DNA of 63,538 nt, the filler included, from Reticulomyxa filosa (lineage: Eukaryota > Protista > Foraminifera): NCBI GenBank assembly GCA_000512085.1. It is 14 parts of 14 records of this genome, joined end to end, with 100 filler letters (N's around TTAATTAATTAA, not from the genome) between each part and the next. Parts side by side here need not be neighbours in the genome. Positions count along the whole stretch, not along the records: positions 19,175 to 27,392 come from ASPP01008627.1; 13 more parts are not named here. One strand, written 5' to 3'. Numbering within the stretch: position 1 is the stretch's first letter; every line of letters begins with the position of its first letter. Under the pieces are notes generated by a model. The model was not told where the DNA came from. It did not search any database and was given only the letters and a program-made list of their open reading frames with translations. Positions 3,264 through 27,392 of this stretch are shown in pieces. A program made the position numbers and the translations under genes.

Positions 3264-3966
3264 CTTTTTTTGAGGCTTGGGAAATAAAAAATATGTAGAC
3301 ATTGTTTTTGTGTGATTGTGATACATATTTATGTTTACAATTTTCAGTTGTCACTATAGTAATAATTAAACTTGTTAGACAATTTTTTGAGTTTTTATCA
3401 AAAAATGAATGTTTCAATTAGCCCAAATTTTGTATAAGTCCATTGCAACTGAAATAACCAATTTTGTAGACAGACGTTTCGATTTTAATTTTTGTAAGCA
3501 AAAGTAGCTGACAGGCTTAAACTTGTCATTTCAAAATACCTATGGTTAATTCATTGTTTTACTCGTTGCTACTAATGTAACTGTTTTTAAATTTGGATTT
3601 ACATTGAATTTCAGCAGTTTTTCATATTAATACAGTCGAGGTAATAATGATACCATTCCAAAGCATTAAGGATTAATATAAATTAGTCTTGTGATAAATC
3701 ATATGTGCAGTGGACAAATTCGTTACACTTCCAAAAAAATTATTTTAGACGTTCAGTGCACTCCTTCCTTCAGACTATTTCTTCAAGAATTGAGAATTTC
3801 TGTGTTTAGTGGAAACATATCAAGAATAATTATTGATTTTATTTATCCAATTACAGCATTATTTGAACAATTCCAATAAATTTCCCTGGTGATTGGAAGC
3901 TTACGGGAAAGTGACTGGTGAATTTTCCAGCACCGCCAATCAACCCAAAAAGGGAGGATAACAAAT

Positions 3967-6953
3967 ATGAGTAGTAGCAAAGAAAATAACAATAGTAAGC
4001 ACGAAGATGAGCAATTGTTGCGTTTGACCATACAACAAGCACTGCAAGCTCAACATGTTTTAGAGCAAACACGTGGAATTGACCGTTTTTTGACACCTTT
4101 CCCAGGTTTTTTTTTTTTTGTCAGCCACCTTTTTTTTTTTTTTTTTTAATTTAGAACGTGTGCTCTACCCTCATATGAAAAAGAGTAAGTCAACGCGGCT
4201 TGTGTGTTGTGTAAATTGAGTAGAAGAAAAGAAGAAAAAAAAAAAAGATGGAAAAGGCGAAGAGCCTGGAAGAAGCGGTGCGACACAAAGCGAAGAGGTT
4301 GAAAATAGTCTGTCTTCGTTAGTGTCGCAAGCATTGAACGTTAAACAAAAAAAATTTTATTTTTTTTTTTTGCACTGGCTTTTCGCAAAGGAAACGAACA
4401 ACAGTACTTTGCAATCTAGTAATGTACAAAAAAAGGTTGATGGATAAAAAAAAAAAAAAAAAAAGGAAATCAAAAAATCGACATTTAATGGCAGGATTTA
4501 GTGGATCTGCACGTGTTCGAAACCGTGTGAACATGGGGGACTTATCACATTATCAATCGATACTATCTCGACTGTCACGCGAGCTGAGTGCAATTGGCTT
4601 GTCAGCAGACTCTTCATTTTTATCACTTACCAACAAACGCTGTGTCGTTTTGGACAAAATTGTCCATCAATACCAGAAAGAATACAGATTGAAAGGTGAT
4701 GCAAACACTTTATTATAAAAGAAAGGGGTTATACTATTTTTTTTTTTTCACCCTCCCCCCCCCCTCCTCCCCTCTTTGCTTCTTATTTGAAGGAGCGTAT
4801 GTTTGCACGTACGATGTGCATGTTTTTTTGAATCCAAATAATAATAACAACAACAATGTTCGAAAGGCATGGCCTCGTCAATTTGCAAAGATTTGCAAGG
4901 CTCAAGCCACTCACTATTGAAAGTGACGGTCGGCACTGGTGTATATATGATGCTGTCCATATTGGAAGATAATGCGCGTACAAACCCCAAGTTGGCTCTT
5001 CGAATCCTCACATATCTGAAAGAGCAACTGGATAATGTGAAACCTTGCGAATTGCAAACATCGGCCAAACTACCCATCCCAAACATTGCAGAAAGCTCGT
5101 TTGACAGTGTCCATGCAACGTTGTACAGTATCGCCAACAATGACAACGTTGACTTGACCATCCGCACCATGTCGTTGGAGCTCTTGTTAATGCTCTCCGT
5201 CACAAGAGGAACCTTGAGTACGTTATTGTCCGTTTTGTATATGCTATTATTTCGAGTTGAGTTATATATGTATGTATATATATATATATTAAAAAAATAT
5301 ATATATGTATATGTATACATACAATATATGTATGTTTGTTTAAATGGCATATGCGGTTGAATAGTTTTCTGCAAATCAACTGTTTTCGATGAGACCCTCT
5401 TTGGTACGCTTGCGCAAAATGCATCGAGAAGTGCAATTGGAGCTACCATCGCAACGCAATCTTATGTTGCGAGTAAATGCGACAGTGGCGATTGGGAACT
5501 CGCGAAAGCTGTCAATGGGCACGGATGACAACTATTTGTATTTCCACAGCGAAAAGGGTATAACGAAAATTGGGACGGGACTGAACAACACGAATCCCGG
5601 ATTTGTGAGCGGACAGATTCGAGAGTATCGAGCCAACGAAAAGTCGAGCATTTGCGTGATTGGCAATAAAATCTATTATCGCAGCACGAACATTGCCCCG
5701 GCGAGTTTGATTGTGCTGTCCACAGAAACGTTGACGGAAATTGGTCATGTGCTGCGCAACGGCGAGGGTACGTATCCGACAGCGAACAATAGCCACGTGT
5801 GCTTTGGACACAGCGAAATGGAGGAAAAGACAGAGGTGGTGGACGAGAGCACGAACAAGGTGGACGACGAAAAGAACGAAAAAGATAGCAAAGAGGCAGA
5901 AGAGAATGGAACGGGCTTCGAACACATACGCAGACGAATGAGAAGGATAATGGACCAAATTGTTGCGTGCGAGGAAGATGGAGCGGACGACGATGAAATT
6001 ACCCCATTGGAAGAAGAGTATGATCGATTGATGGAAATGCTGCCGCCTGAAATCCAAGACGAAATCGTCGAAGAAAATGAACGAGGCGACACGGATGAGC
6101 AATCACCGGAAGAAAAAAAGGAAGTACCAAAAGGTCCCGAGGCCATCCCCCCTTTCAGTCCAATCTTCACTGACGGCCGGTTTCTCTTTGCAGTGGAGGT
6201 CAACAAATTAGAACCTGATCAAGGAGAGGATGAAAAAAAAGGAGGAGAAGAAGAAGAAGAAGAAGAAGAAGAGGACGAAAAAGAAAAAGAAAACGATGAT
6301 AATGAGGATGACGAAGCCAAGGATGCAAATGAAAGCTGGCATGATATGGCGATTGACTTTGAAGATGATGAAACTTCTATATTGCCCTCACTAGACGATA
6401 TCAACCGAAATGAAAGTAAAGACGCCGAAAACTTGAATGCTAAAACCAAAGAGGAAACAATTCTCAAAACACATTTGACCATTCATGCGTTCGACCCAGA
6501 GGAAAAATTAGAACATTGTCACTCGATCACGCTGAAACGACCACCTCCAAAAATCGAGGAATGTGTATTGGATTTTAATCTCCCAGGTGTTTGGAGAAAT
6601 ATAATATACATGTACATATACATATATGTATACGTAATATATTGTTTCCCCCCCCTTTTTTGTTACAAGTACCGTGCCATAAGTATGACAATATGTCCAA
6701 ACTTGTTTCTTCTATTTTTGTAACTAGAGGACATTGCGGAAAAAAGAAAAAGAATGCCAATGCCGGCGATCAATATTCGCGAACTAAAAAAGTGCAAAAT
6801 CCAAGGAAAATACGTCGTGCATAGACTTGGGCTGTCCCAAGGAGTTGAACTTCAGTGGTGCAATAACGATGGAATGTTGGGTCAGATTTCCAAACTCGGA
6901 AAATCGACAAGTTATCAACTTTTGATTCCATTTTTTTTTTTTTTTTTTTTTTT
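3967..6953 (+). CDS. N-terminal part of a giant E3 ubiquitin ligase-like protein (MYCBP2/HECTD4/HERC-type N-terminus), truncated by the contig end
   Basis: Motifs LSVTRGTLSTLLSVL, TDDNYLYFHSEKGITKIGTG and PIFTDGRFLF resemble N-terminal motifs of HERC2/HECTD4/MYCBP2. Introns 4696-4866 and 5256-5363 splice in frame. The 5' exons from 3967 are inferred. Confidence 0.6.
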
Positions 6954-10541: not shown

Positions 10542-11303
10542 CAAAACCAAATAAACAAAAAAAAAACCAAAAAGGGGAAAGGTTGTACATACTAAAAAAA
10601 AAATACAAAGGAAATTTTTTTTTTTTTGTCTCATGTGCGCACTGAACACATGCCGGTGTAATTTTGTTCTTTCATTTTACTTTCTTCTTTTTTGTTTTAT
10701 TTTTTTTTTTCTTTGTCCAAATGGCAGTTTTGCTGACATGTTGCTCCTTTCAGTGTCCTTTTTGCGACTGTTATTTCAGTCCAGAAGGTTGTGCTCGTCG
10801 GTAAAAGAAACGACGAGGAGTAAAAGTTCTTTTGGTTTTTGCCAACCTTTGTTTGTAACCCTTTAAAGAGTAATAAACAAGTATTTTTTAAAAATTGAGC
10901 GATTTTCTCGAATCACAACATTACCTTTTCCTAAAACGACTTTTTTGACAAAGATCAAGTTCGTGTACCGTTCATTAACATTTTCAATACAAAAACTGTC
11001 CATGATATAAGAAAGATTTGACTATTTTGATTCTTTGGTCAGGCCAATGGGGACGTCAATGTACTAGATATACTAGATATCTTGAATCAGTGCAAACGAA
11101 ACAATAATGTATTGTTTCATACATTCTAATAGCCAAAATCTGATGATTTTAACTTGAAAATGTTTGTACAAAGAAAGGGGGGGGGACAAAAAGTGTGCAA
11201 ATCAGATGTGAAATAAGAATTAGTGCAATCAACACTGAAATACAAGCCTTTATGAAACTGCCGGATCAGATAAAAATAGAACAAATCACAACAAAATATG
11301 GCT

Positions 11304-12367
11304 TCATTCTACAAGATTTTTTGCTCTGTCCAAAAAAGGGAGGATATTAATCCTGCCATATGTGATGACTTCACAAGAAAGTTTTTTAAGAGGAAACTGA
11401 AAAACTTTATCGATTTGATATCTGTCGCAAATGCTCCGATGCAAATAGCCTTGTTGATTGGAAGCCACGATAGTGTTCCACTCCTCTTCAGGATGCGTAG
11501 AGTCAGTGGCATCCAAAACACTTTGAACAATGCACTCCATATTATAATGGGTATGTCCAAAAAACCAAGCACAAACAGGGTATTGGAACAAGTGCTCCAA
11601 ATGGCTAAAATTCATTTGTATAGACACCTCATTGAAGGAAAAGGGGTCAATGCACCGGTAGTCTGTCGGCGCATGATGTGTTAAAATGATCAATTGCTTA
11701 CGTGCATCGTTGTGCTCACATTTTTCGTTTTCTTTTTGCAAGTTCTCGATTTGATCCATCAACCATGACACATGTTCGTTATGAATTGCCTTCTGTATCT
11801 TCCACCGTCAATTTTCGTGTATCTTTGCGAGCTTTCGAAAGTTCAGGGTCAGTATCTGGTCCCTCTTCCAATTCTATTTCATATCAAACATGTTTTGCGT
11901 CTCTTTCTTTTTCCAACATGCAACAACGAATGCATGTACAAGCATGGATATATATATACATATATACGTATACGTATATGTATGTCCTGATTACTTTGCA
12001 CATACATATCGACGTAAAAACAAATTATTATTATTATTTATTTATTTTTTGGCAAAATAAAGATAACTAGACTCTTCTGGTGCAGACTGTGTTGCTGTAA
12101 TTTCTTCTTTGCTTTTTTGGATTTCAATCATAGTGTAATCGTTAACTTGTTCCATTGCCTGGGAATGCAGCTTCTTGTCAATGGAAGGCCACAACGTGCA
12201 GCCTGCAATTCTAATGTTCGGCAAAACGTCTGGAAATTCGATTGTGTTGCACTGCAAAAAATGTACGTTTTTGAATCCCTCACAAATTGTTTGAATTGAT
12301 GCATGAACTTTGTGATATTCACTTGTGTAATACTCATGGTTTCCTGCCTTATTTTCCCCATATACAT

Positions 12368-19174: not shown

Positions 19175-19198
19175 TTTTTTTGTTTGTTGTTTGCTTGT

Positions 19199-19630
19199 TT
19201 AAAAGAGATAGTGTTTAGATCTTTCATTTTCTTTTCTTTTTACCTTTCTGAATAAAACAGGATTCAAAGTAAATGTACGCCAAAATGACCTTGACAGAGT
19301 AAACAAATGTTCAAAAGAATCGTGATCCAAGAAAGAGAAAATATATGCCTGCATGGTCGTTGGCAAAATTTCATCAAAGGAGCCTGTACACAAATATATA
19401 TCACGAATCTTGTTTTGTACTGAAAAACATTCTGCATTTTTGTTCTTCTGACACTTTTCTATTTCCACATCCAGCTTTTTCCTGAGAATTTCTTTCAGTT
19501 CTTCAAAACTGAAGACCGAAAAAAATCTTGTCAAGTCTTTTACATTTTGTAATTTGTCCATTCGACGTAGTATTTGCTTGTACATGTGAAATAGTTCTGT
19601 TTCTTTGAAATGTATAGGAAGGGAGTTCAT
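19199..19630 (-). CDS. F-box-like protein, 5' exon (3' part lost in the gap)
   Basis: SFDEILPTTMQAYIFSFLDHDSFEHLFTLSRSF fits the F-box pattern LP.EI...IFSFL....L....VSR.F. Confidence 0.6.
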   Translation of the reverse strand: MNSLPIHFKETELFHMYKQILRRMDKLQNVKDLTRFFSVFSFEELKEILRKKLDVEIEKCQKNKNAECFSVQNKIRDIYLCTGSFDEILPTTMQAYIFSFLDHDSFEHLFTLSRSFWRTFTLNPVLFRKVKRKENERSKHYLF

Positions 19631-19884
19631 CTTTTCCTTTTCTTTTTCCAAGGAGTTTATTAGAAAATTTTTTTACAAGGTGTCCAGTAAAAACTTTATG
19701 AAACTCTTGATCACTTTAACTTAACATTAAAACAAAAATCTACTTTATCTCGGAAAATTGCCTATGAACTACTAATAATTGCATAGCCCTTTGATTAATA
19801 TTTTTGTTTATTTGAAAGTCTTTTGGAATAACTTGTAAGATGCGTATTGTACTCGATTTTGGACAATTGTCTTTCATTGAAGAC

Positions 19885-20100
19885 GGACACATTGGTCGCG
19901 TTGGTAGCATTGAATTTTCACCATTTAATGACAAAACTATTCGTTTATGAGATATTGAAAACCACAATTCATGGTATTCAAAGGACATTAAGTTATAGCG
20001 ATTAGTGTAAAATATGGATCGAATGAAGTAAGAACAGATTTTATCAATTCCGTTAAATGGTTGTGCTGGAATTTTAAATAACGACGAGAGATATATGTTG
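19885..20100 (+). pseudogene. Scrambled WD40 plus Kelch-tail fragments
   Basis: GHIGRVGSIEFSPFN-DKTIRL*DIE, VFKGH*, VKYGSNE, then ILSIPLNGCAGILN, which resembles TLPIQLTGCAGVLS of the neighbouring Kelch gene. Confidence 0.65.
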
Positions 20101-20333
20101 AAGATTTTTATTAGTGATCAGCAGGAACTGAAGATAATAAAACTGCATTCAAATATTTTAAAGAAGCATGAAAAATAACTAATAAATTATTCAAAAATGG
20201 ACTGAAAGAGCTTTAGAAACAAGCAAATAAATTGAGAGAATGTGTGTGTGATATAATTTTTTTTGCTTCCTAAAACAAAATTATAATCATCTTTTGCAAT
20301 TGCTTTGTTGTAGTTGTAGTTGTATTTGCTCTT

Positions 20334-22626
20334 TTACAGTTGTCCCCAAAATTGAACTACTCCATCATTAGAAGCTGAAACAATTCTATTACCATCAGCT
20401 GAAATGTCTAAACCAGTCATATATCCTGAATGTCCTTCCAGTTTTTGTATTTCAACTCCTAATTTCACGTCCCACAATCGAATAGTATTATCCATTGAAC
20501 ACGATATAACAATCTTTCCATCGGAAGAGAAGTGTACATCAGTCGCGGGCGCAAAATGTCCTACTAATTTTTGTAGTAGTGTTCCTGTCATCACGTTCCA
20601 TATTTGAACTGTCTTATTCAACGAACAAGATGCAAAGAGGAGACCGTCTGGAGAAAATTTTACTTTATACACGGATCCTAAATTTCCCTTCAATTTCTTA
20701 ACGATTTCGCCAGTGCTTACATTCCAATTTATAATTGTTTCGTCATTAGATGCTGATAAAAGTTGGTGGCCATCAGGTGAAAATTGTACATCATTTATCA
20801 CTGACGAATGTCCTTTTAAAATGTTTGTTTCTTTTCCAGATTGTACACTCCATATTCGAATGGTTTGATCTTGTGAACTAGATACAATAATTTTCTCATC
20901 TGGGGAGAAGTTTACTTTTGTCACGCCTTTTGTATGTCCTTTCAATATTCGAATTTCTGATCCTGATTTTACATCCCACAATCGAATAGTTGCATCTTTT
21001 GAACCTGATACAACCATATTACCAGTTAATGAGAATTTTGCATCATAAACGAAATCCGAGTGTCCTTTCAATATTTGAATTTCGGTCTCTTGTTTTGCGT
21101 CCAGTATTCGAATTGTCTCATCACTTAACGCTAGAACAAGTTTCGTACAATTTGATGAAAATTGTAGACTTTTCACAGAGCAGGAATACCTTTGAACGAC
21201 ATGTAATGGTTTGAAATATTTCCTCTGTTTATTGTGTTGTAATGTTTGGATACACCATTTGGGACATTAACCAACACCCGAACAAATAGAACGTACCAGA
21301 ATATATCTGCAAATCATAATGTTAAAATCATCTACCCATCCTAATTGGATGGACAATGGTTTCATCCAATGTTCAATTATTGTTTCAATATCTTTCTTTT
21401 TTCTTTTTTTTTTTTTTTTTTTCTCGTACCCACAAAAAAAAGTTTTAAAAGCACATCACTTCTCTCAACTTTATTTCGATATGCATAGAGTAATAAACTT
21501 TTAGCTTTCGAATGTCCAATTCGTCCTTTATTTTTTCCAATTCATGTTTGATCTCTTCAATTTCTATTTTTTCAGTTTCTTCGACATTCCATTGCTTTTC
21601 TATTTCTGTTTCTTCTTCTTTCATCCATGTTTTCACTTCTGTTTTCAGATGTGTGGAAGTTAAGCCCTTTCCATCACTCCCTCCGATAATATGTATAAAT
21701 AAGTCATCTTCACTCAAAACCCCAGCACAGCCAGTCAGCTGAATAGGCAAAGTTTGTTCAAATTTCATCCACTTGTCTTTTGTCATGGAATATCTATACA
21801 CGCTGTTCGAAGCCCGGATAACAGGTCGATCATCTCCACCAAAAATCAAAATAAAATCGTTAACATAAATGTAAGCATATTGATTCAATGGTCTGAGAGT
21901 TGTACAAACTTGTATACTATGTGCTGTAAAGCTATTATTGACTTCATCGTATGTAATAGATATCCCCGTGTGTTTGGAAAATACCACCATTTCACACATC
22001 TTTTTGTCATTCCTTCGTTTTGCCACAAAACAATGTCCTCCAAATGCATAATAAAATGGCAATGTGTCATGCTTGATAAATTGGCATATATTCAGATCAA
22101 ACACGTCAATGTTCTTTGAAGGATAAGTAATGAATAACAAATGATTTTCACTTCCACCAACCAATGCACGCACACCAACATAGTCATCATCGGGCCTTCC
22201 AATTACAATTGGCTTGCCCTCGCTGTTGGTAAGCGGAACCCATTTATTGTAGTCCCTTTGGCTATCCAATTCAATGTTGGCTCCATCGTTATCCCAAACA
22301 CTAACATATCTCATTATTAGTGTATGTCTTTTGAAGAATTTACTTCCACACAGAAACAATACAGAAATATCATTTGGATTCTTGTCGTTCACACGCTTCA
22401 CCACACAGTGCCCATGTAACGAAACATTTTCTGGATAAGAACAAATTAATTTGTACTCTCCTTTTAGTGTGTGGTAAGAAAAACATCTTCGTTCGCAATA
22501 ACCTCCGCAAATGAGAATTTCGTGCTGGTGGATCACACACTGACCTTGAGTCAGCGAAACAGGCAAATGGTTCAAAGATTCAAAATGTGTAGAGGTGGCT
22601 TCTTCGATTTGGCCATTCGTATTCAT
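20334..22626 (-). CDS. Kelch-like propeller + linker + WD40 propeller protein
   Basis: Kelch features (LICGGY, HGHCVV, LIFGG, HIIGG) in 21445-22626. A middle exon (IIEHWMKPLSIQLGWVDDFNIMICRYIL) splices in frame to about 7 WD40 repeats in 20334-21225. Confidence 0.85.
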
Positions 22627-22965
22627 TTGAAGAAAGTCAAAATATTCCGAGCTTTTGCCAACTTTTCCAAAGGGAAATTAGATTCAATTACTTTGAGAGT
22701 TTTTTGAACCCACCGGACTTCAAAAAACAGCCACCTTTAAAACACACGTTTTCAGTACTTATTATTTACAAGGATCATTTTATTAATCTACGTCACAGAA
22801 CGAAGATTTTCACTCCTTTTCTCAGACACCAAGCCCACTTGCAGTGTATTTTGGATTTATTTTATTCTTTTGGGAGCGGATCAACTAGCAAAAAAAAAAG
22901 GTCCTGTTTCTCCGACTGTTAGACCGAAGGGCTCTAAGATTTTTTTCGTCTAAAGGCAAATTTCA

Positions 22966-25284
22966 ATGTGGTCCAGATCATTAATTTCAACATTTTTTGC
23001 ACTGTTCTTTGTATATGAAGTGAGTAACAGCTGCACACAGATAGTAGTAACTAGCGGTGAAAGCAGCGATGTGGACTGGCTAGACGGAGTTTTTGAGATG
23101 GACAAAGAGTTGCGGGTTGATGACCGCTTAGTATACAAAGAAAAGAACGGGACGCGAGTGATTTACCACTACAGTGGAGCAGTGAACAGCAAAGAGCGTG
23201 AGAGCGGAAGATGGTTATTGGGTTCAACAGCCACCATTGGAACGGACAACGCCTGGGCCTATCGTTATTCGTGGAGTATTTCTCCAGACGACCGCAGCAT
23301 CAGCTCACTGCACAACAACGAGCAGCAAGCACAGCCGTGGAAAGTGTTTCAAAGTGATGACTGGGCCGACGTCGACGACTTACATTTTTACTGTGAAAGT
23401 GTATTCGGGGATCATGACGCTATGAATGATTTATTATTCATTACCACGTTACAAAAAAAAAAAAAAAAACTTTTTTTCGCATTAAAAATATGTTGATGTG
23501 TTCCTCCCCCTTTTTTTTTTTTTTTTTTTTTTGAAGAGGTGCGTCCTTGCGAGTTGCAAAAAAAAAAAAAATAATCCCCTTACGTTGCAATGTATACCTA
23601 CCCTCTGCACGCAATTTATAAATACCTTTTTTTATTTTTATTATTGTTGTTGTTTCGTGCCCCCCCCCCTTCTCTTCCTTTCAAAAAAAAAAAAGGGATG
23701 ATCAATTCGAAGATAAAGAACTAACCTATCAAAATATTCATGGGTTTTACATTCGGATCAGTGAAGACACGTTTACGAAGATCACAGGCTCGAAACGGAT
23801 ATTCTTTCGCGAACTAGCAGCCATGTCCGAGCTGTTTGTGGTGACCGATGAATCCACCATCCAAGAGAACGGCTTGCCGCCTGCAGTGTCGCCGAGCACC
23901 AGCAAGCTGACCAGAACCAGTTCGGACGGGCCTTGGACCTTGACCACCAGTGACGGCAAAACTGTCAATGATATCCATTTGATGGTTCTGCAGACGGTTG
24001 AAGACGAAAACCAAAACCAAAACGAAGACGAAGATGCGACGGAAACCATTTACGATTTGATGCGACGATACTTTCAGGAACATAAAGTTGAACAGCGAGA
24101 AACAGAAATTCAAGTATCCGAATTGAATAACAGTTATTTCCAACTCCCTTCTCTTTTTTTTTTTTTGCAGCAATGCAAAATGTGAACACATTTTTTTGTC
24201 TTTTTCTTTTCCTTCAGTCTAACGTTGGGGTGTATTAACCCTCTTTTCTTTTTCAATTTATTTTAATATGCACATATACATAATATGTATATAATATGTG
24301 TGTATGTGTGTATGGACATGGGATTGAAAGAAATGTCTTATCCAATGGTTAGTCTGGGCACTGGGGGATTGAATGGAATGAATGAAAACTATCAAGTGAT
24401 AAAGGACGCTGTGACAAAGTATGGGTATGCTGCCATTGACAGTGCGAGCACGTATGAAAGTGAGTCGACCATTGGCACGTTGTTGACGGAAAACAAGGCT
24501 CTGCGCTCGCAGCTGTTTTTGGCATCGAAAGTGGCACCCACGGATTTGACTTTGAGACGACATTGGACTCAGTTCACAGAACATTGGACGCGATGAAAAT
24601 TAACTATGTGGATTTGTACATGATCCATTGGCCGGTGTGTTATGATGACTTGCCATTTGTTGACTGCAGTCAGAGCAAGGATGGCAAATGGCAACAATCG
24701 TATGATGCATTGACCAAGTTGTATGCAGAAGGAGTTGTTTTAAATCTAGGTGGGCCATATGTGTATGCAATGCTTGTTTTGTTTTGTTTTGTTTTTTAAT
24801 TGGAAAGAAAAAAAATGCATCTACACACACACACATACATGGGCTGTAATTAGGAGTCAGCAATTGGGACGAACAATTATTGAATGATTTGTTACAAGAG
24901 TTTCCCATTATTCCACAAGTAATGCAAAATCATGTTGACTTGACACGATTGGACTGGGACTTCTTTGACGTCCTTCATGAATATAGAATTCTCTTACAAG
25001 CATATAGTCCTCTTCGAGGCTTGGCCCAAGCAAAAGAACCCGAGCAAATTGCTTGGAAGGAATCACTAGACCAACTGGCCCAAGAAATTGAAGAAGATCA
25101 AGGCATTAAGATATCAATTTCACAACTCGTGTTGCGCTTTTTCTTGGAAAATGACATTGCTGTCATTCCCATGTCCACTAAAAGTTTGCATCTACAAGAA
25201 AATAACAATTTTCTCCATTTTGAGCTCACTTCTGACCACAATGTCCGTATGGGTGGTCGAGAACCAGAAAAACAAGAACTGTGA
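22966..25284 (+). CDS. Aldo-keto reductase with a probable signal-peptide N-terminal extension and C-terminal KQEL
   Basis: AKR motifs PMVSLGT, IDSASTYESE, FLASKV, YVDLYMIHWP, GVSN, QAYSPL and VIPMS; 1-nt frameshift near 24552. The link between upstream exons (22966-24113) and the AKR exons is inferred. Confidence 0.8.
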
Positions 25285-25833
25285 AAAAAGGTAGTGTTTA
25301 ATTTGGTTGAGTTTTTTCAGTTTGGCTTGATTTAAAAAAACTCACAATACACGAATCTCGTTGTGCTTTCATATCAGCCAGTTTTTTTGATATAACACTG
25401 TCCTATTGCGTTTCTTTTTTTTTATGCTCTCACAAATTGGGGACAATGCTTTTTTTGTTGTACAAAAACACAACAAATTTGACTTGTCTATACTTTTATC
25501 ACAAAAAATAAAAAAGAATCATATGGATTAATAATGTACATGTTTCATCAACGTATTGTCGGCTACAATATTGTTAATTCATTAAAAAAAGAGCTATCAC
25601 TTTTACAAATCACCAAAATGAATAACTTTAAATCTGAAAAGTCTCGAGCGTGTTTCGACATTGGCTCTAAAGATTTTGATGAACACGAAGCTGCACAAAA
25701 AGATAGGTTTAACGGCTAGAGATTAAAAAATCACTTGAAGAACTCTTATTCGCTTCAAACAAAGTCAATGTTTCTTTATTTTTATTTTTATTTTGATTTC
25801 ATTTGTTTTGTTTTGTTCTATTTAAAGGGCAAA

Positions 25834-27300
25834 TTATTGCACGATTTGTTGTACTCGAGCCATAATTGTGGGATACACGAATTTGTGTCTTCTATGGCCA
25901 GCTTGGATTATAAATAAGCTGTCACAAGTCAACTTTTCGCGGGATCCTAATTCATGATAGAAATTCCATCGCCCAACACGATATTCTAAAATGTAGGGTA
26001 ACATAAAATATATTTTTTTGTTGTAACAAGTGATATCTTTCAAAGTAATATAACACAATTTCCCGTCATACCTTTTTCAATTCGAAAGTTCATTATTCGG
26101 TACAAACGGCGTCGTGCAAATGATGCTAGATACAATATCGATTTAATCATTGTCAAGTCAACATGTTCAGAGAAAGAAAAAGAGACTAAACATTCAAAAA
26201 AGTCACTGGGAAGCAATACGACCAATCTTCCTTTGGGATTCTTATTGATGTTTTTAGCATTTTTTCATATTATACATTCACACAATAAAAACACAAATAT
26301 CTAGTATGCAGATGTTATATTTTTAGATGCCAATGAAATCAAAGAAACAGTTTTATGTCAGTAATTTGTTGTTTTTATAACACTTAACTTTTGCGATCAT
26401 CTTATGAAACAGAACAGTTATAAATATTTGTTGCAGCAGTCCGATCACAAATACAACAACAAACTCTCATAACCCAATGACGACCAAATAAACAAAGAAG
26501 ATAGAGAAAAAAAGCAATGTGTTCATTTGACGAAACTAGCAATCCAACGTACAAAGCTGGAAAGGCAACTATATAAATAAACAAAAAATAAAAAAACATA
26601 TATAAGACGGTTTTTTTTTCTACTCTTTTTTAGAAACATACATTCAAAGTCAGGATTCATAAATACACGATCATAGTTTTGACCAATGTGATCGTTAAGA
26701 ATATAATTTTCAATAAAATCCATATCAAATATGTCCGCATGAACCCACTTTGCATGCCTATTGTCGATTTTGACGATTGTCAAAAACAACAACAACAAAC
26801 GAATAAAAGCTACAAACCGAGCTAAAATTTGTCCAGCTGCATAACGTGACTTTTCTTTTTCAACAGCTAACACATGTTTCCCCGAAATGTGCATTGTGAT
26901 AGCACCGTTACCAGCCATTAAATCGGCAAAGTTTTCCTCCTCTGGTCGACGCATCGAAGCCATATATTTGCTAATTCACGACCATATAACCACAACAACA
27001 TAGAGATGCATTTTGTTTTAGTCCATTTAATGTGTCAATAAAAGCATGTCCAAATCAACAATGACAACAAAAGAAACAAGACCTCAAGGCTGGAGGCGTC
27101 TTGGCAAATACAACGCTTTCAATGAGACGTTCGACTAACTCTTCTCTGAAGTAACAGAGCAAACGGAAAGATAAAAAAAAAAAAAAAAAGGTGGAGTGTT
27201 TGTCAAAGTGGCATTTGACTAAACTTGCCGCCAGAAAAATCTAGTCCCCGTGAAACACACGTGTTTCGAAGTTCTTGAACGTCCAACTCCATAAAACGTT
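25834..27300 (-). CDS. SAP domain fused to a prokaryote-type amino-(N6-adenine/N4-cytosine) DNA methyltransferase-like domain; 5' end in the gap
   Basis: Exons 27300-27225, 27145-27083, 26970-26818, 26757-26642, 26568-26537, 26400-26389, 26240-26192, 26125-26072 and 25985-25834, all with GT-AG introns, give one open frame. SAP: FMELDVQELRNTCVSRGLDFSGGKEELVERL. MTase motifs: X (KTPP), I (DLMAGNGAI), II (AVE), III (HADIF), IV (VFMNPDF) and VI (GRLVVLLP). Confidence 0.78.
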
Positions 27301-27392
27301 CTCGTCTCTTGTTTTCAAAACAGCAAAAGGGAGAAGGAGGAAGAAGAAAGAGAAAAAAAAAAAAAAAAAAAGTAAAATAATGTAAAAAAAAA

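Follow-up and report, generated by a model that had tools for sequence, protein, structure and literature searches.

A spliced Reticulomyxa filosa gene for a SAP-methyltransferase protein of an apparently unnamed and possibly chromatin-directed family

The window analysed here is a stretch of 63,538 nt joined from 14 parts of the genome of the foraminiferan Reticulomyxa filosa (GCA_000512085.1). The part comprising positions 19,175 to 27,392 (ASPP01008627.1) carries on its minus strand the 3' portion of an intron-rich gene (25834-27307) that encodes a SAP-like segment followed by a methyltransferase domain. Its exons were aligned to P0001, a metagenomic intron-less ORF of 239 residues carrying SAP and methyltransferase. 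The following features were assigned:

27308..27392 (-): 3' end of an intron, cut by the edge of the piece; pyrimidine tract and AG
27225..27307 (-): exon 1 of the visible part; first SAP helix; 12/27 identities to residues 5-31 of P0001
27083..27145 (-): exon 2; carries the second helix of SAP as well as motif X (TP, approximately 27099-27094); 13/20 identities to P0001
26818..26970 (-): exon 3; motif I DLMAGNG at 26924-26904 and motif II Glu at 26861-26859; 32/50 identities to P0001
26642..26757 (-): exon 4; motif III Asp and motif IV NPDF at 26657-26646; 22/38 identities to P0001
26537..26568 (-): exon 5; helix after motif IV; 9/10 identities to P0001
26389..26400 (-): exon 6, a 12-nt micro-exon (MIAK) with AG/GT flanks; fills the gap at residues 151-154 (MIRN) of P0001
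26192..26240 (-): exon 7; strand of motif VI, with LLPSDFFE as family signature; 13/16 identities to P0001
26072..26125 (-): exon 8; basic helix in which arginines are conserved; 13/17 identities to P0001
25834..25985 (-): exon 9; last strands with conserved G..Y and K..DS.F, short tail and TAA; 33/49 identities to P0001

Joined, the nine exons comprise 714 nt, i.e. 237 codons and TAA, with matching phases and each exon open. All introns are of the GT..AG type, 60-148 nt long and lower in G+C than the exons. The stop-free frame of nine GT-AG exons including the micro-exon, assembled earlier in a sequence-only reading, was borne out by the ordered match to the intron-less P0001: Aligned singly, eight of the nine exons fall on P0001 in order (44-90% identity). 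On P0001, exon 5 ends at residue 150 and exon 7 begins at residue 155, leaving four residues between them. Position and phase of the first intron (phase 2) are common to L001 and L004, two relatives from Tara, where it measures 81 and 67 nt compared to 79 nt in the Reticulomyxa gene. Since pN (0.23-0.28) lies below pS (0.66-0.82), the gene is under purifying selection. Judged from these comparisons, the SAP-methyltransferase exons are those of a real, conserved and spliced gene. A chance splice model was ruled out by the exon match to P0001, the pN/pS values and the conservation within the family.

The start of the frame had been placed at 27300. This had to be revised: exon 1 follows an AG at 27307, and a pyrimidine tract extends up to the edge of the piece. 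With an acceptor AG ahead of exon 1 and an intron at the edge of the piece, the gene continues beyond it and its 5' part is missing. Within the piece, no match to the PHD region of the relatives was found. Reticulomyxa exons were compared singly or via naturally open stretches, and database homologues were used instead to build the fold and the trees. With the open stretch over exons 3-4 as query, three relatives were obtained at 46-50% identity, and five in a full HMMER scan. Matches to ribulose-phosphate epimerase were short and were judged to be due to chance.

An aldo/keto reductase gene with several exons (window 24285-25284, +) is convergent with the methyltransferase gene. A WD40-repeat ORF is located at 20334-21176 (-) and a Kelch-repeat ORF at 21445-22626 (-). 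Both repeat types are expanded in foraminiferan genomes. For ORFs of 176, 150 and 82 aa at 22966-23496 (+) and 19199-19988 (-), Pfam gave nothing convincing; the first of them (22966-23496) has a signal-peptide-like start, and the 150-aa ORF displays, by eye, an F-box-like end. Prokaryotic or viral contamination was ruled out by the eight introns of the methyltransferase gene and by these eukaryotic neighbours (WD40, Kelch, split aldo-keto reductase).

Profile searches yielded about 40 relatives with a G+C content of 30-59%. Judged from the neighbouring genes where these were readable, the loci appear eukaryotic (introns, RPS28, V-ATPase C, Ras, P450, JmjC, protein kinases); several short contigs carry no informative neighbours. 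Exact peptide patterns, with which distant members could be missed, found no family member in 185,579 GTDB prokaryotic genomes or IMG/VR. A domestication in one lineage does not fit the occurrence of relatives on many unrelated-looking eukaryotic contigs. Short intron-less versions of the family are present in metagenomes (P0001, P0029, L006). The literature searched, with subscription papers, the supplement of PMC4738411 and a 2011 survey of the same group outside its coverage, holds no description of the PHD-(SAP)-NPDF family. Apparently, this PHD-methyltransferase family with an NPDF motif is unnamed and separate from N4CMT and chlorophyte Dam.

Some loci of relatives display individual features. 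P0038 (ENA contig, 3804 bp) is a divergent NPPW member behind a stretch resembling the C-terminal domain of a retroelement integrase (Integrase_p58_C, E 0.016; MLVIN_C, E 0.21) and may represent an LTR retrotransposon that carries a family methyltransferase. In L004, a JmjC-domain gene (3839-5374, -; E 6e-26) is convergent with the family gene, an adjacency not seen at the other loci. L001 contains tandem RPS28-like genes (11142-11414 and 11829-12113, -), of which one is ordinary and the other has diverged strongly.

In every cellular-type member examined, the enzyme forms the C-terminal part. A PHD lies shortly upstream of it in L001, L003, L004, L006, L010, L011, L014, L015, L016, L019, L021, P0029, P0031 and P0033; in L006, L010, L011, P0029, P0031 and P0033, both are part of one ORF. 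The Pfam scores of the PHD are under the cut-off but consistent, and the best PDB matches are PHF23, ASH1L, PHF20, BPTF, SET3 and MLL5 (E 3.5e-5 to 0.01). The PHD fingers of these proteins read methylated H3K4. From its closest relatives, we infer that the Reticulomyxa gene itself encodes a PHD beyond the edge of the piece. The proposed fusion of SAP and methyltransferase stood in part: SAP (PF02037) passes the cut-off in the orthologue P0001 (24.3 bits versus 23.9), whereas exon 1 alone, with the domain split by an intron, remains under it (Pfam E 0.004, 17.1 bits). SAP or SAP-like segments occur in only one subclade (P0001, P0004, P0009, P0010, P0014, L001, L004, L016; support 100/98), where they are inserted between a shared helix with a Y-R motif and motif X. 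By contrast, PHD precedes the enzyme across the family, and the assignment of SAP as core targeting module was abandoned. Because of its confinement to one subclade, we regard SAP as having been added later, with PHD as the constant partner.

A beta domain before the PHD is common to both subclades (hhalign 65%, E 6e-5) and weakly resembles Kre9/KNH Ig-like domains (score under 0.9). In some members, a MORC3-like zf-CW (E 0.004) or FYRN/FYRC is present in addition. RNA-binding domains (CCCH, KH, THUMP) were seen in no relative. Tudor/Agenet-like stretches noted by eye in L001, L004, L014 and L016 were backed by neither Pfam nor PDB matches. Upstream of the Ig-like domain, a helix YE..R..N..RN...L..LG is conserved (L006:2049, L010:1209, L011:911, L015:1805, L019:3710, L021:7312), which may resemble the HELLS-binding helix of CDCA7. 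If this likeness is real, it would tie the family to the HELLS/DDM1 remodeller. L003 has an in-frame TAA between PHD and SAP (305-307) where relatives have Tyr, which would be explained by an error in the assembly, by a nonsense allele or by codon recoding.

In the family model and the alignment, the catalytic domain displays a class I Rossmann fold with the motif order X-I-II-III-IV-VI, in agreement with the gamma-order amino-methyltransferase layout deduced before. Two further early assignments were corroborated: The enzyme is not of the MT-A70 type, as its order is unpermuted and the relatives lack a Pfam match to MT-A70, and no large target-recognition domain is present in the family fold model. 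Motif IV, previously taken as NPPF/Y, reads NPDF, which is also the family norm. Among 40 protein entries with the motif, NPDF is found in 29 (near-duplicates included), NPPF in four family members, and NPAF, NPSF, NPPW, NPDL and TPEP once each. This departs from the consensus [DNSH]PP[YFW] at the end of strand 4 by replacement of the second proline, with N, P and F retained. Each of these three residues is found in 24-26 of 27 members. Conservation across about 27 members extends to the SAM-pocket residues D, G, G, E and D and to six Arg/Lys positions, and pocket, Asn and Phe are retained in 80-100% of members. In amino-methyltransferases of this clade, the target amine is bonded to the side chain of the first motif residue and to a backbone carbonyl, and the last aromatic residue provides the stacking surface for the base (PMC4738411, Box 1). 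Activity despite the Pro-to-Asp exchange appears plausible. In a sub-branch of the SAP subclade (P0010 and P0014; L014:6251-7378), motif IV is degenerate (NPDL, TPEP), and these proteins are possibly inactive paralogues.

A structure model based on a 20-sequence family alignment reached pLDDT 85 (single-sequence folding: pLDDT 38). Its structural Z scores are effectively tied for Lmo1582 (17.0), METTL5 (16.7), HsdM (16.2), PH1948 (16.0) and M.TaqI (15.7). BpuSI is also among the top folds, and HEMK2 ranks low (13.7 versus 17.0 at the top). The Foldseek matches are mixed, with M.BseCI, HsdM, TaqI and CamA alongside TrmM. DNA methylases and TrmM align to the end of the model (residue 201), whereas METTL5, Trm11, KsgA and HEMK2 stop near 180; alignment to residue 201 is a weak discriminator, as TrmM reaches it and the tail of the model is of lower confidence. 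The TP and helix 12-20 as well as the fold matches to HsdM (16.2) and TaqI (15.7) agree with Group 2 of Iyer et al. (M.EcoKI/M.TaqI-like), with METTL5 tied. A nucleic-acid substrate is likely for the family enzyme.

Prokaryotic or phage DNA methylases had been expected as nearest neighbours. With the mad2 profile of PADLOC, 18 of 20 members gave a match spanning almost the entire domain (best E 1e-12). In MADS, genomic m6A requires Mad2 (10.1101/2023.03.30.534895). PHROG 3820, 'DNA methyltransferase', was matched with E 2e-7, and the neighbours in the ESM Atlas and a viral library are mostly phage N6_Mtase/Eco57I/MTS clusters. For these phage and plasmid neighbours, DNA-methylase function is based on annotation. 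With the N-terminal half, plasmid and KP27-type enzymes score 37-40 bits, E. coli TrmN 35 and PrmC 30; with the C-terminal half, the phage-type P0052/P0053 alone score (hhalign 98%). A sequence search of the PDB returned RsmC, RlmG and HemK as best matches, all weak and confined to motifs I-IV, and METTL5 is matched by sequence with E 0.05 over the same motifs. This means, the expectation holds for the profiles, where Mad2 and orphan phage/plasmid enzymes are the best matches, but is weakened by the structure comparison, in which METTL5 ties.

Two phage-type loci were recorded in the course of these searches. In Aeromonas phage 32, L033:1177-1761 is designated 'acetyl-coenzyme A synthetase' in GenBank, yet its motifs are those of a small NPPF methyltransferase, and it is probably misannotated. 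In the phage-like operon L025 (4550 bp), the NPPF methyltransferase P0053 adjoins a DUF6610 gene and, by eye, a PAPS-reductase-like ORF. This operon is possibly a DNA-modification cluster.

In the tree with long rows removed, the family forms one clade (97/97), and NPPF members branch first on the midpoint drawing. In a first tree, it was joined weakly with the KP27 type (80/78). Fragments, near-duplicates and RsmA were omitted from the trees, the second of which also omitted P0038, P0048, HsdM and R16L; sequences of METTL5, Mad2 and PCIF1 were absent from both. AU tests retained all four alternative sister groups, including RNA/protein and phage enzymes (p-AU 0.23-0.41). With no sister group rejected and METTL5 tied in structure, the phage or bacterial donor inferred at the outset is a candidate, as is DNA as the substrate. 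An origin from a mobile-element DNA methylase would be the best-scoring lead and not a result.

We favour, with modest confidence, the interpretation that the family comprises chromatin-directed, histone-reading DNA amino-methyltransferases which probably generate 6mA. From the gene structure, the predicted fold, the conservation and the architecture of the relatives, we infer histone binding, DNA as substrate and activity. The visible exons would represent the C-terminal SAP-methyltransferase end of a larger chromatin protein that follows the family layout: a variable low-complexity/reader region, the Ig-like beta domain, PHD, SAP (in one subclade) and the gamma-class NPDF methyltransferase. 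The PHD (ASH1L/MLL5/SET3/PHF23 type) would dock on the histone H3 tail, probably at methylated K4, and SAP, where present, together with conserved basic residues would hold nearby DNA. The enzyme would then flip a base against the Phe of motif IV and transfer the methyl group of SAM to an exocyclic amine. Adenine N6 is the most probable target because motif IV begins with Asn and not with Ser, the usual first residue in N4C enzymes (PMC4738411; PMC8885841). Since a target-recognition domain is lacking, the sites would be selected by the state of the chromatin and not by a long sequence ('histone-read, DNA-write'). DNA is favoured as substrate because the partner domains bind DNA and histones and none is an RNA-binding domain. 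Against a DNA writer count the motif IV without second proline, which drifts further in a few members, and the tie with METTL5, the high rank of TrmM, the weak matches to RsmC, RlmG and HemK and the score of E. coli TrmN near those of the phage enzymes.

The latter matches would also suit a chromatin-tethered RNA amino-methyltransferase (m6A/m2G on nascent mRNA, snRNA or rRNA) brought to active genes by PHD and SAP, an alternative that we consider unlikely. With PCIF1, a DNA-methylase-like fold acting on RNA is already known, METTL5 and PH1948 tie for the top fold, TrmM/TrmN, RsmC and RlmG are among the matches, and one clade of the family with RNA/protein enzymes was retained (p-AU 0.41). Moreover, N6A-MTases have been recruited to RNA several times (PMC4738411). 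However, CCCH, KH or THUMP domains occur in none of the relatives, the sequence matches to RNA enzymes cover motifs I-IV only, and the patchy distribution and divergence appear unlike those of housekeeping RNA enzymes.

NPDF in place of NPPF in most members, and NPDL or TPEP in paralogue-like ones, could in turn indicate a catalytically dead or weakened fold, kept as base-flipping reader or scaffold as in METTL14 or the DIRS1 MTase domains. This is rather improbable in view of the high conservation of SAM pocket, Asn and Phe, of a motif IV Asp that is itself conserved instead of drifting, and of the earliest branches on the midpoint-drawn tree, which keep NPPF. About equally improbable is a histone or other protein amide or amine methyltransferase with HemK/N6AMT1-like chemistry that is placed by reader domains: HEMK2 ranks low in the fold search, and PrmC scores under the phage/plasmid enzymes without a match to the C-terminal half, although HemK-type enzymes have the same motif and appear among the weak matches. 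Reader-plus-writer architectures are common in histone enzymes.

Accepted eukaryotic writers of DNA amino-methylation are few, AMT1 for 6mA and N4CMT for 4mC, while further claims are disputed. If the family consists of histone-reading DNA amino-methyltransferases, the fixed fusion of PHD and methyltransferase predicts a further writer and a direct link from an H3 mark to a DNA mark in poorly studied protists. We tentatively raise the possibility of an old, unnamed eukaryotic writer, independent of AMT1, DNMT and N4CMT, in which a phage/plasmid-type enzyme was permanently joined to a preceding H3K4-reading PHD, dispersed over several protist lineages, acquired a new NPDF site and performs chromatin-directed methylation to 6mA (or 4mC). 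In addition, NPDF tests how far the active site of an amino-methyltransferase may depart from the textbook consensus. With RNA or protein as substrate, the family would still be an undescribed group of chromatin-coupled enzymes.

Among known enzymes, MT-A70/AMT1 are circularly permuted with DPPW, in contrast to the unpermuted Reticulomyxa family. The RNA m6A methyltransferases METTL5/TrmN6 share the fold with tied Z scores, but their sequence match is restricted to motifs I-IV. To our knowledge, they have no chromatin-reader fusions. The best profile matches are Mad2 (whole domain), PHROG 3820, KP27 gp35 (KP27 type, N-terminal half) and P0052 (both halves). Mad2 and the orphan phage/plasmid enzymes differ by NPPF, the lack of reader domains and an identity of only 25-30%, and none is resolved as donor.

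Prokaryote-type N6A-MTases from Reticulomyxa and other rhizarians constitute Group 2 clades 5/6 (PMC4738411). These enzymes carry an MTase-S specificity domain as fusion partner, and one of them a restriction nuclease in addition (PMC4738411). Unlike them, the protein described here ends in exon 9, about 30 residues past the last core strand, without an S domain, and no MTase-S domain was detected in any relative scanned. Similar in concept is the Dam of chlorophyte type (family 1), which Iyer et al. place in Group 2 clade 2 (PMC4738411), likewise a Group-2-type N6A-MTase with histone readers. It is fused to PWWP and ZfCW/PHD-X, or to ParB-HTH (PMC4738411), and zf-CW is also present in some relatives of the Reticulomyxa gene. 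Compared by description and Pfam rather than directly, the family differs from chlorophyte Dam by a canonical PHD, the Ig-like domain and SAP instead of PWWP; PWWP and ParB were not matched in the relatives scanned, nor Pfam Dam, D12 and PCIF1 in 20 members at E up to 0.5. Bdelloid N4CMT has a permuted beta-class domain (PF01555), SPPY and a C-terminal chromodomain and is limited to bdelloids (PMC8885841), whereas the Reticulomyxa family combines the unpermuted gamma order and NPDF with an N-terminal PHD (and SAP or zf-CW) on many eukaryotic contigs. In both cases, an intron-bearing prokaryote-type amino-methyltransferase is joined to a reader of histone marks (PMC8885841 for N4CMT), and the Reticulomyxa family would probably follow the same read-write logic.
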